Source: Podarcis muralis (taxonomy: Eukaryota). Taken from it: DNA of 64,000 bases. The notes under the pieces are model-generated. The model worked only from the letters and a program-made list of their open reading frames with translations. It was not told where the DNA came from and did not search any database. This document shows, piece after piece, positions 39,764 to 59,587 of this stretch; the first letter of the stretch is position 1; every line of letters starts with the position of its first letter. A program made the position numbers and the translations under genes. Location of the stretch: contig NC_135667.1 in the NCBI RefSeq assembly GCF_964188315.1, positions 20,956,001 to 21,020,000 on the forward strand, read 5' to 3'.

Positions 39764-40366
39764 TTTATTTGTCTAATCCTATGTTGGAGCCATATTTCTG
39801 AGGAAATAACCGAAGGTCACTTCCAGGTGAGCTATTTATGGAGCATTCATCCCGATCTGTTTGCACAAAGACTGAGCATTCGCTCCGATTCCTTTGGAGG
39901 GAGATTATACAGCGTTGCATCAAGCAAGTTTTAATCCCACACTTTTGAGTGCATTTCCCCATCACCTTCCTTTTTGATTGGCGGAGCGGATGAGCTTCTT
40001 GAGAAAGAGCGTTAGCTCAACTTTAATCACGCAACCTGAATTTGCTGGTATGGGATTAAATCCCACCTGCAAAACAGCAACAGTCTGGAAGCTGCCTGAT
40101 TTCCCATTCATTTCTTTCTTACCTAGAAATGTAGATGCCTCACCTGGGGCTGCATACACACCACACATTTAAAGCATGAACACACATACACACCCCACAT
40201 CTCCTGGGAACTGTAGCTTGCTGAGGACTGTAGCTCTGCGAGGATAAAGCTACAGCTTAAATGTACGGTGTGCGTGCAGGCCTACTGAATTTGGCTGCTA
40301 TGGCCTTGGATCATTCTGTCATCATTTGGCATTTGGGAACTGATTTGTTAATGCGCCTTCGGTTGG

Positions 40367-40371
<5 letters not shown>

Positions 40372-40423
<52 letters not shown>
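40372..40423. repeat. (TC)n microsatellite
   Basis: Direct inspection. Confidence 0.95.
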
Positions 40424-40427
<4 letters not shown>

Positions 40428-41071
40428 TCAAACCTCCTGAATTTTTATTATTGTAACAACGGCTAGCTACCTTAAAGGTATTTTTTCTGGGATGGGAAGG
40501 CATGATCGTAATGGTCTAATAAACAGATGAGTGAATAAATAGCAGCCTTACTTGTAATCGTGTTAATGGCCCGCTAATCTCTGCTCTATTTTGTAATTAA
40601 TCAGAACCCCACCCTGAAATTTGCTGTGGGTTGTTCCACAAGTTGGGAAAGAACCTGGGTGTGTTTTGGTCAAAGTTCATTGCACAGGGTTCAGGTCAAG
40701 TTGCCACTAAATTGTCAAGAGAGAGAGCGAATCTTTCTCTTTTTTAGAAGGGTTGATATGTGGGTGAAAGTAAAAAAGGGAGGGTTAATAAACAAGATGG
40801 ACTGAATTTTCCAACTATGGTTCTGCACTCCCCTGAGTTGGAGGCTGATTTAGTCGGCATTTGACACTGACTGTCTCTCAATGCTTCTTGTTTCCATCAA
40901 GTTTGTGGTGTGCTGCTTTTAACAGTTGTGCAAAGCCAGAACGGACTGTGGCAATGAGTTGCAAAGGGGAGGAGGAGGATGTGGTCAGAAGCTTTGACGG
41001 CGGCGTTACTTCCCTCCCTGGGGAGAAAGGAGAAGCTGCTGTACCTCCTCTCCACCTGACCCAGATGTCCG

Positions 41072-44000
41072 ATGGAGCACCTTCAACGGCTGCTGGGGAC
41101 CCTGCAACGGGCTCTGGTAAAGGAACCCCCTTTTGTCGTCAGCCAAGCTGGGGTGGGCTCCAGGGCCCATGACTTACGTGGAGGGAGGTGGGTGCATCTG
41201 CTGGCTTGCTCAACAGACCGTCTGCATTCAGTGTCTCCCTTGCTCCACCCCATCTTCAGGATTATGTTTCGTCCTTCACCACTTACCTGCTTGGAGATGA
41301 AACTTACCCAGGAGCAGAAGAGTCAGGACATAGAAGGGATAGGAGCAGCCGAGGCAGCAGCCATGACGGGGAAGTGGAGACAGCACACTCTGGGTAATGA
41401 AGCTGCTGGCTGAGGTGGGAGTGGGGGAGCTATTTATGCTTGGAGCTTTCTACCTCTTGAGTGGAAGGGTCTCCACAGCAGCTGGATTCACCCTTTCCCC
41501 CTCTTCCCTGCAGGGACATTCCTCCAAGGAGACATCTGGAGGTCTTTGAAGGTTCGCTCACCGCAGAGGTAGGTGCTGGAAAAGAGGAGGCGGGGAAAGA
41601 GTCATTTAAGCTCCGCCTCTCCTTCACCATGGTCCTTCCTTTTTCAGATAACCCCAGCCAACCAGGAAATCCAGGCAGCATCAGAAGCAGCAGATCACGA
41701 TGCTCAGGCGACAGAGTCTGTTCACAAACCTTCCAAGTTCCCCAACAGATCTGAGGGACAGAAAAAGGCTGAGGAAAAGCTCTCAGGTGATGGAAAATTC
41801 TAGAATGTGCCAAAGTCACACTGTGGAGGGCCCGACGGGTGTTTCTAGGAGGCATGGGTTGCTACCTGGTTTGATTTAGCTTGGAGTCTCCATCTTAAAC
41901 ATAAATGTGTGGGAAGCGATTGTGGTTGCTCAGTCTTGAGGATAAAACCGTCTGCATATGAGCAGAGAAACCTCTATCTTTCCCATTGACACATTCCTGG
42001 GCTAATTTATGCCATTTGAATAAGGTTCCAGAACTGGGACTACTGACCCATGGCTCATCCTGGAAAGAGAAATCAATATATTTATATTGGGCACTCTGCA
42101 TGCACTGATGTTTCTCTGCTATTGTTTTTATTGATCGTGACCCTGAACGTTTAATGGTCCTGTACAACTTCAGATTTTTTGGTGCTTTGTTACTGGGGAT
42201 GATGTTTTATTCTAAGATCTTGCACGATGATGATGATGATAATTTGTTAGCCTTGTTGCAGTTTACAAGAAAGTACGATAATGAAAATATTTTACAATAA
42301 GAAAACATCCTTAATTTCTGGGTGGAACAATAATATAGGAATGTGTATATTTGTGGGGAGAAACCAATATCTTTAGGTTCTGGGGTGCTCAAATGCAGAG
42401 CTGAAGAGACCAAGATCTGTGTGAGCACAGTATGAGATTCATAGTGTAGGACCCAGGAAAGAGCCCCTTCAGCAGTAACTCCTAGTATTTGTAACTCCAT
42501 CATAACTGAGGCCATTAAGATTCCTCTTTTCTGGTGGGTGTTCAGAGGAGGAGAGACCTGAATGCTATTAGCAATTGTGATTCAGTGATAACTGCTACGT
42601 GTTTTTGAAAGATCCTGGTTCATCAGTTGTATGCATTTTTATCTATTTGCTTTGTTGTAAGCTGCCCTGTGAACGCGGGTGGCGCTGTGGGTAAAAGCCT
42701 CAGCGCCTAGGGCTTGCCGATCGAAAGGTCGGAGGTTCGAATCCCCGCGGCGGGGTGTGCTCCCGTCGTTCGGTCCCAGCGCCTGCCAACCTAGCAGTTC
42801 GAAAGCACCCCCGGGTGCAAGTAGATAAATAGGGACCGCTTACTAGCGGGAAGGTAAACAGCGTTTCCGTGTGCGGCTCTGGCTCGCCAGAGCAGCGATG
42901 TCACGCTGGCCACGTGACCCGGAAGTGTCTTTGGACAGCGCTGGCCCCCGGCCTCTTGAGTGAGATGGGCGCACAACCCTAGAGTCTGTCAAGACTGGCC
43001 CGTACGGGCAGGGCTACCTTTACCTTTACCTTTTAAGCTGCCCTGTGGCTTTTGCAAAGGGAGCTATATAATTCAAATACATTATCCAAATACATAAATA
43101 CTGTAAATGTGACCTTCCTAATTTCTCCCCCACAGAGTCCTCTCAATTCCCAGCTGATGCTCCAAAGTCAAGCCCCACAGCAGCTGCGATCAGCAGCATT
43201 AGACAGAAAGATGTGGAGGGGCCAACTGCTACTGAGGGACTCCATCAGCTGGAGCTAGAAGGAACCAGCTGGATAGGAGGAGTTCAGCAGCAGGGGGCAC
43301 TAGAGGAAGAGGCAGATACAGAACAGCATCAGCATGGGGAAGCAGAGAAGCCCAAAGGCAAACAGCCAGAGGAACAAGGGCAGGGAGAAGAGACTTCAGA
43401 GGAGAGGGAGGAAAAACAAGTGGGAACTGTGTGGTATGACGGGATCCAGCAAACTGCACCAGATTGGGCACTATCTGTGGGAGAAGAGCAGAGAGGGATG
43501 GTGAGGGCTGTGGGGTTTCAGCTCACTGGGGGGGTGGAGGAGGAGGTCAAGATGGTGGAGAGACAGCAGCTAGAGGCTGAGAGACAACAGGAAAACGAAG
43601 CAGAGATGGAAAAGGACCTGCTGGAGGAAACCAATATGGTGGTTGCAAAGGAAGGAATTCCACAACCAGTGCCAGGCAGGGCAGAGAGTGAAGAAGACCA
43701 GGAGGAGATGCTCAGAGGAGAAGCTGAAGCTGGGAGAAGCCATCTGTGGGAGCCAAAAGAGGAAGTGGAAGGCACAAGAGAGACTGATTGTGGTCAGGAA
43801 AAGGAACTGGGAGAAACTTTCTGGTACAAGGGGATTCAGGAAAGGGTACCAGATTGGCCACAGTTTGTGGAGGTACAACAGCGAGGGCTGGAGGAGGCAA
43901 CCAAGATGGCAGAAGATGAGCAGCTGGAGGTTGAGCAGGAACACAAAGAAGATCCAGAGGCAGAAAGGCAGGAGGGAGAGACATGGGCTGTGGGATTTCA

Positions 44001-45020
44001 CCACAAGGGGCTGGAGAAGGAGGAAGAAGAGGTCAAGATGGCAAATGGTCAACAGCTGGAGGTCAAGCAGGAACAGGAAGAAGAACCAGAGGTGGAAGAG
44101 AACCTGCAGGAGGAGTTAGATATAGCCGAAGAAGAAGAAATTCAGCAAACAATGCTGGGCACTGCAGAAACTGAGGGAGGGCAGGAGGAGGAGCTAGACG
44201 AGGAAGAAGAGGCAGGGAGATGCCACCAGTGGGAGCCAAGGGAAACTGCTGTGCTTTTGGAAGGGCAGGATGGGGAGCCAAAGGGAATAGCAGAGAACAG
44301 GGGTGGTCGGTGGGAAGAAGTGGCAGGTGCAGAAGAGACAGAAGGGGTCCAGCAGAGGGAGGAAGAGGAACCTGTGAGAAAGGAGGCAGCAGCAGAAGAA
44401 GAAGTGGAACTTGCAGGAGAAGAATGGCTGGAGGAGAGTGATCAGGAGGGTGAATCAGAGAGGCTGGCAGAATCTAGTGGTCTTTTTGACAAAGAGGTGC
44501 TGGAAGCAGCTGGAGTCCAGACAAAGCAAACAGAAGAGATGGAAAGTGGCCGGCAGCAAGAACCCATGGTGTGCACTTCCTCCATCGCTGGGACGTTCCC
44601 AGTTAAGGTAAGCAAAACTAAAATAAAAATGGAGCATGATGGGAGTCAGGACTCTGGAGTTAACCAATTCACTTCTCCTGTGCAGGTCACGGCCCTGGAC
44701 ACAAGTCACCAAATGGAGCGGGTGCTGCTTCGCCGCAAGAGCTCTATCCGGCGGGCGCCCAGCACAAAGAGACAGCCAGTGGAGACCCAGCCAGAGACGA
44801 TAAGCGTAGCTGAGGAGGTTCCAGCTCAACCACAAACACCGCGCAGGCAGAACCCAAGGCTTTCTGGGTAAATATGAATATCCTATCACCACCAGCCCAG
44901 GAGTTAACCTCGGAGTTTTGCCTCACTCTGCTCATTCATTCTCTTTGCCTCCCCAGGTTTGGGCCTATGCACCCCAACATGATGGCTGAACTTCAGACCC
45001 GCCTGCGCAAGCCCCAGTGA
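41072..45020 (+). CDS. APOBR: APOBR-like (apolipoprotein B receptor orthologue) Glu-rich protein, 7 coding exons, ~696 aa
   Basis: Exons: 41072-41116, 41260-41393, 41514-41568, 41648-41786, 43136-44607, 44686-44867, 44957-45020; phases compatible. The N-terminus MEHLQRLLGTLQRAL|DYVSSFTTYLLGD resembles human MDFLRLYLPGLHQALRGALDSLGTFVSYLLGD, and the C-terminus GFGPMHPNMMAELQTRLRKPQ* resembles GFGLAHPGMMQELQARLGRPKPQ (recalled). Position head-to-head with CLN3 and tail-to-tail with IL27 is as in mammals. The small middle exons are less certain. Confidence 0.85.
42672..43033 (+). mobile_element. Full-length Sauria-type SINE with 14-bp TSD (taagctgccctgtg) in an APOBR intron
   Basis: tRNA-like head with B box GGTTCGAATCC and an (accttt)n tail. 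TSD at 42658-42671 and 43034-43047; CpGs are retained. Confidence 0.9.
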
Positions 45021-59383: not shown

Positions 59384-59587
59384 NNNNNNNNNNNNNNNNN
59401 NNNNNNNNNNNNNNNNNNNNNNNNNNNNNNNNNNNNNNNNNNNNNNNNNNNNNNNNNNNNNNNNNNNNNNNNNNNNNNNNNNNNNNNNNNNNNNNNNNNN
59501 NNNNNNNNNNNNNNNNNNNNNNNNNNNNNNNNNNNNNNNNNNNNNNNNNNNNNNNNNNNNNNNNNNNNNNNNNNNNNNNNNNNNNNN
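59384..59587. other. Assembly gap (204 N)
   Basis: Run of N. Confidence 1.

Follow-up and report, generated by a model that had tools for sequence, protein, structure and literature searches.

The APOBR protein of Podarcis muralis ends in a basic tail that carries two short conserved blocks, and we propose, at a probability of about 0.5, that the first of them (block 1) is a divergent version of the motif that opens the Pfam family Tankyrase_bdg_C (PF15327), and that it would serve for docking in the cytosol. Judging by the orthologues compared, both blocks are short linear motifs that date back to the common ancestor of lungfish and tetrapods.

The gene occupies positions 41072–45020 on the plus strand of the window (the whole stretch of 64,000 nucleotides that was analyzed) and has seven coding exons (Table 1). 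Exon by exon, these match exactly the NCBI entry "apolipoprotein B receptor [Podarcis muralis]" (P0001, 696 aa), which equals the spliced product of the window and was taken as the spliced protein. On the public chromosome, the upstream neighbor is CLN3 (Pfam PF02487) and the downstream neighbor is a gene of 232 aa, both on the minus strand; the human gene order at 16p11.2 is presumably CLN3-APOBR-IL27. Since the database name, the synteny with CLN3, and the common N- and C-terminal modules all agree, the orthology to APOBR, as called in the initial annotation, is secure. The P. muralis gene is no different from the rest of the APOBR group and has the same N-terminal module, acidic repeats, blocks 1 and 2, and CLN3 neighborhood.

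The initial annotation had also read the tail after removal of a 78-nt intron, and this reading proved to be exact, both in the product (P0001) and at the RNA level. The 78-nt joint is supported by the transcript contigs of runs X1 and X5 and by the stranded raw RNA-seq reads of runs X21 and X22, and the 89-nt joint by the contigs of X1 and X5 and the raw reads of X22. RNA depth within the two introns is zero, with no sign that the in-frame intron is retained. Because this intron keeps the frame and contains no stop codon, the mechanical ORF at 43213–44871 crosses it. The final four residues of exon 5 (FPVK) are the first four of block 1, so that the 78-nt intron, of phase 0, lies three codons past the F (FPVK|VTALD); the 89-nt intron ahead of GFG is of phase 2. 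Two variants were observed in exon 6 in the RNA runs (44778 A>T and 44799 G>A), both synonymous third-base changes in Pro and Thr codons. Elsewhere in the window, a (CT/GA)n microsatellite at 40261–40503, ~600 bp upstream of the APOBR start codon, gives SLSLSL and ERERER ORFs, and 204 N at 59384–59587 correspond to an assembly gap or a masked stretch.

Table 1. Coding exons, introns, repeat copies, and block 1 of P. muralis APOBR, in window coordinates
Feature	Position	Strand	Description
Coding exon 1 (MEHLQRLLGTLQRAL)	41072-41116	+	P0001 aa 1-15, exact; donor GT; opens the amphipathic N-terminal module
Coding exon 2 (DYVSSFTTYLLGDE...)	41260-41393	+	P0001 aa 16-60, exact; splice ends from sequence context
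Coding exon 3	41514-41568	+	P0001 aa 60/61-78, exact
Coding exon 4	41648-41786	+	P0001 aa 79-124, exact
Giant exon 5	43136-44607	+	Acidic, disordered, internal repeat; 3' end ...GTFPVK
Exon 5 repeat copies	43483-43761 and 43963-44244	+	
Block 1 (interrupted by the 78-nt intron)	44596-44763	+	F-PVKVTA-LDTSHQMERVLLRRKSSIRRAPS
78-nt intron	44608-44685	+	GT (44608)..AG; in frame and stop-free, yet removed
Coding exon 6	44686-44867	+	VTALDTSHQMERVLLRRKSSIRRAPSTKRQ...RQNPRLS(G), in its longer form VTALDTSHQMERVLLRRKSSIRRAPS...RQNPRLS(G); remainder of block 1 and basic/Pro-rich linker
89-nt intron	44868-44956	+	GT..AG
Last coding exon 7	44957-45020	+	(G)FGPMHPNMMAELQTRLRKPQ*; block 2 and TGA stop

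According to our composition analysis, P0001 contains 24% D+E and has a net charge of −97, whereas the 85 residues at its C-terminal end carry a net basic charge (15 K+R vs 7 D+E). The top mean Kyte-Doolittle value over 19 residues is 1.08 in P0001 and at most 1.12 in five other squamate orthologues; a TM helix conventionally needs ~1.6 in such a window. By hydropathy and by inspection, none of these six proteins has the signal-peptide-like N-terminus or the TM-grade stretch of a classical membrane receptor. The N-terminus of P0001 (MEHLQRLLGTLQRAL) is charged and amphipathic, with a high hydrophobic moment. These results bear out the earlier claim that the protein lacks a signal peptide and a TM helix. 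The chain had further been described as acidic and disordered-looking, in agreement with its net charge and with an AlphaFold2 model of the tail computed from a 29-sequence alignment (mean pLDDT 61), where the sole structure is a helix at MMAELQTRL (pLDDT 80–85). Exon 5 holds a tandem repeat of ~95 aa (P0001 241–333 vs 401–494, 48% identity). This repeat keeps aromatic anchors (W/F...VGF...EEEVKM...QQLE...AGR.H.WEP.E), and skink APOBR orthologues have many copies of a related unit. The layout of APOBR is that of an amphipathic N-terminal module, an acidic, repeated, and disordered chain of ~550 residues, and a basic tail of ~85 residues.

A profile built from squamate tails was searched against 1.84 billion representative proteins and gave 37 matches at E ≤ 1e-3. 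The matches come from squamates, turtles (P0027-29), a mole-rat (isoform P0046), a lungfish (P0041), and, in large number, amphibians, whose APOBRs are 2,000–3,700 aa long compared to ~700 aa in lacertids; all but one odd repeat ORF are APOBR-type. The possibility that the matches of 2,000–3,700 aa were TNKS1BP1-like or fish proteins was rejected, as they are amphibian APOBR that share both termini with the other orthologues. None of the APOBR proteins listed by a word-index search carries a Pfam annotation.

Block 1 has the motif F-x6-LD-S-x-Q-K-x-RV-x-LRRK-x-S-I-RR, of which P. muralis carries the lacertid version, and across all orthologues it reads [FL]-x6-L-D-x-S-x-Q-[KR]-x-R-V-x-L-R-R-K-x-S-[IV]-R-R. 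Across the same set, block 2 reads H-A-G-F-G-x-x-H-P-x-M-M-x-E-L-Q-x-R-L. Both are near-invariant in 17 squamate tails and are kept in squamates, turtles, a mammal, amphibians, and lungfish, with the GFG, MM, EL, and R columns of block 2 invariant in 29 tetrapod and lungfish sequences. The N-terminal module, M-[DE]-x-L-Q-R-x-L-P...A-L-x-Y...F-G, is kept from amphibians to mammals and has no match in Pfam. The residues RRAP, which the initial annotation had counted as part of the motif, occur in sauropsids and one of the lungfish copies but are not kept in amphibians, which have RRKQG. A degenerate mammalian version, described there for the human protein, was indeed found in the Nannospalax copy (LDVSVPRSRVLLSRSSSQRRSRP). 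The near-invariant Ser of block 1 sits in R-K-x-S-[IV], which is a basophilic-kinase (PKA/AGC-type) consensus.

Several members of this set have unusual features. The lungfish protein P0041 (Protopterus annectens, 434 aa) contains two copies of block 1, one of which includes RRAP, and its block 2 is preceded by seven KVKIPSHAFKLPVPPPG repeats; these repeats give a sub-threshold match to Pfam Chisel/SMPX (23.6 bits, E 6e-5) that is probably inflated by the repetition. P0044, a 240-aa ORF (L002:6001-6723) on a 445-kb ENA metagenome contig with eukaryote-like neighbors, has four ~38-aa "FDVTSQRDERLVLRRHFTARRTPCP" repeats. Its match to the APOBR tail profile (E 5.5e-5) is likely that of a tandem-repeat ORF and not of a relative. 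In P0026 (MetaClust, 367 aa) the blocks are ordered 2-1-2-1, an arrangement that suggests either tandem duplication or an assembly/model artefact of an APOBR-like tail. Many orthologues, among them P0003, P0004, P0006, P0008, and P0036, have received wrong automatic names ("golgin A6-like", "trichohyalin-like", "uro-adherence factor A-like") due to their E/Q-rich repeats.

To compare the tails with known families, we used scans at E ≤ 10 over 24,736 Pfam families, in which PF15327 has 167 profile positions and a gathering cut-off of 27 bits. Block 1 of 9 of the 10 snakes, of Elgaria, and of Rhineura matched this profile at E 3.6e-4 to ~0.06 and 14–21 bits. The snakes scored between E 7.6e-4 and 0.012 (16.5–20.3 bits), the anguimorph Elgaria reached E 0.022 and the amphisbaenian Rhineura E 0.064, while five amphibians matched at E 4–10 in the same register as squamates. 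Isolated 61-aa pieces of block 1 gave the best scores (E 3.6e-4 to 9.2e-4, 20–21.4 bits). However, no APOBR orthologue attained the 27-bit cut-off, the best piece standing at 21.4 bits and E 3.6e-4. No match, even at E ≤ 10, was obtained with the P. muralis exons, the read-through ORF, or pieces of P0001, and skink, turtle, and mammal APOBR did not match either. As the matching orthologues inherit one motif, they amount to one borderline-significant observation repeated, not to independent trials.

The initial annotation had assigned a TNKS1BP1/KIAA1671-type motif to the window protein itself. The in-register, sub-threshold matches of snakes, Elgaria, and Rhineura speak for such a motif in APOBR, but the P. 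muralis copy does not show it at E ≤ 10. Consequently, this lacertid protein cannot be said to make the homology visible, at least to an HMM, and the Pfam profile check that had been named in advance as decisive formally went against the idea for the window protein, which has no Tankyrase_bdg_C match.

The resemblance could also reflect chance or the convergence of short basic, Ser-rich motifs, in which case APOBR would be an orphan family with C-terminal motifs of its own, unrelated to TNKS1BP1 and KIAA1671; we regard this as a serious but less likely alternative. It would account for scores that all lie at 14–21 bits when 27 are needed, and for a match so fragile that one to three substitutions remove it, as in lacertids and in skinks, the latter differing from snakes by two or three residues. 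The aligned span covers profile positions 3–49 (at most 55) of 167, or ~27%, block 2 has no counterpart in the profile, and the ~60 related segments scanned inflate the best E-value. In the reverse search with the APOBR tail profile, neither TNKS1BP1 nor KIAA1671 was among the 37 matches, and the C-termini of these 37 had no PF15327 match at E ≤ 0.1. On the other hand, PF15327 is the lone family of the 24,736 to match many members and the sole one recurring across many tails (8 of the 29 tails of the broad set and 8 of the 17 squamate ones), which is harder to reconcile with coincidence. Snakes, the anguimorph, the amphisbaenian, and the amphibians all align in one register, F falling at profile position 3–4 and LD at 11–12. 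Neither half of block 1 scored alone; both are needed, so the signal does not come from the basic run only. The shared architecture, a large disordered protein with the motif ~80–165 residues from the C-terminus and after a giant exon, also argues against chance. Controls were negative: PF15327 matched none of 21 N-terminal segments of these proteins, nor a 552-aa acidic ORF. The register agrees with the spacing in the TNKS1BP1 and KIAA1671 strings given in the initial annotation, and those strings were found in no paper.

Taken on these alignments, the balance tips slightly toward block 1 being remotely homologous to the Tankyrase_bdg_C opening motif, that is, toward a common ancestry with the corresponding motif of TNKS1BP1 and KIAA1671. 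If the link is real, APOBR would carry a known module in shortened and divergent form and would not be a formal member of the family. The likeness lies in an F-x6-LDSS...RV.L...RRAP-type motif placed close to the C-terminal end of a large, disordered chain. The ~120 remaining profile positions, in contrast, are unmatched in APOBR, and unlike Tankyrase_bdg_C proteins, it ends in a strongly conserved GFG..HP.MM.ELQ.RL helix. A pattern search of APOBR-type sequences showed that the conserved tankyrase-binding RxxPDG is absent. The link between APOBR and TNKS1BP1/KIAA1671 appears to be unpublished.

For the family itself, a partner is known. Residues 1543–1635 of TNKS1BP1 bind CAPZA2 directly (Ohishi 2017, as stated in PMC10092648), in agreement with the capping-protein binding that the initial annotation gave for the TNKS1BP1 C-terminus. 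Residues 1617–1711 of KIAA1671 are 32% identical to this CAPZA2-binding region, and KIAA1671 co-purifies with CAPZA2 in a pull-down (PMC10092648). Provided that the PF15327 domain sits at the extreme C-terminus, a placement based on protein lengths of 1729 and 1806 aa for TNKS1BP1 and KIAA1671, profile positions 3–49 would fall within the CAPZA2-binding fragment of TNKS1BP1, which makes CapZ the leading candidate partner of block 1. Under our proposal, block 1 is probably a docking peptide for a cytosolic partner, and heterodimeric capping protein (CAPZA) would be the first candidate by analogy with that TNKS1BP1 fragment. The near-invariant Ser in R-K-x-S-[IV] could plausibly act as a phospho-switch, and block 2 is modeled as a short terminal helix. 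CapZ binding by APOBR itself, for which the argument is one of analogy, seems doubtful. In the literature, no paper ties APOBR to CapZ or TNKS1BP1, the co-mentions being unrelated gene or protein lists. A cytosolic, actin-capping-related role of APOBR is a fair but unproven idea.

Block 1 was also compared to the CPI-motif regulators (CARMIL, CD2AP, CKIP-1, CapZIP, and WASHCAP), with which it shares the character of a basic linear peptide in disorder ending in RR-x-P; their mode of action would be comparable only if block 1 does bind CapZ. The CPI consensus LxHxTxxRPK(x6)P had no strict or loose regex match in 50 APOBR-type sequences. A PDB profile search with the APOBR tail returned no relative and no CPI peptide chain, just chance matches to plectin (E 0.3–0.8).

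The basic tail may instead attach a peripheral-membrane lipoprotein receptor to the membrane, with block 1 working as a MARCKS-like electrostatic kinase switch on acidic phospholipids and the N-terminal amphipathic helix binding lipid surfaces, so that the likeness to TNKS1BP1 would be functionally irrelevant. The excess of 15 K+R over 7 D+E in the 85-aa tail of a protein of net charge −97, the fit of R-K-x-S-[IV] to a basophilic kinase site, and the high hydrophobic moment of the N-terminal helix are all consistent with this. Human APOBR is described as membrane-associated and as binding triglyceride-rich lipoproteins, which would point the same way. Published work reportedly ascribes surface TRL-binding and uptake activity to human apoB48R, and this counts against the cytosolic proposal. 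However, the conservation of block 1 is residue-specific (LD, S, Q, RV, and L) and does not merely keep the charge, and block 1 has no MARCKS-type aromatic or hydrophobic anchors. Membrane attachment is, in our view, quite unlikely to be what the tail is for.

Block 2 (HPNMMAELQxRLRK) was considered separately as a WH2-like G-actin-binding helix through which APOBR would contact actin directly. The AlphaFold2 model does show a short amphipathic helix followed by L-R-K, and its sequence is not unlike the MAEI...LKKT stretch of thymosin beta-4. Yet Pfam WH2 had no match at E ≤ 10 in any of the 29 tails, and a WH2 regex failed in every orthologue because the spacing from the helix to LRK is about two residues too short; we consider this reading very improbable. 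Of the earlier suggestion that the terminal MMAELQTRLRK helix may be a second actin/oligomerisation motif, the predicted helix (MMAELQTRL) stands and the actin motif finds no counterpart in either WH2 search.

Returning to the proposed kinship of block 1 with Tankyrase_bdg_C, a broader version would place APOBR beside TNKS1BP1 and KIAA1671 as their third paralogue, though a strongly diverged one. It would then be a myeloid scaffold of the cytosol, with block 1 as its docking site for capping protein, and the "apoB48 receptor" label would reflect a secondary or artefactual lipid-surface affinity of the amphipathic N-terminus. We consider this version rather unlikely. The human loci are 16p11.2 for APOBR, 22q11.23 for KIAA1671, and 11q12.1 for TNKS1BP1, and the three regions would be linked by the paralogues YPEL3/YPEL1/YPEL4, MAPK3/MAPK1, SEZ6L2/SEZ6L, UBE2L3/UBE2L6, ZDHHC8/ZDHHC5, and ARVCF/CTNND1. 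Such a pattern would be consistent with 2R ohnology.

Both in annotation and in citations, APOBR figures as a macrophage lipoprotein receptor, a label that contrasts with six squamate APOBRs without a signal-peptide-like N-terminus or a membrane-spanning segment. If true, the link to TNKS1BP1 and KIAA1671 would provide the first testable molecular handle on an intracellular role of APOBR and would define a conserved peptide of ~30 residues, including a near-invariant kinase-site Ser, for binding tests. Even if the link is due to chance, two deeply conserved motifs would still locate the function of this orphan protein.
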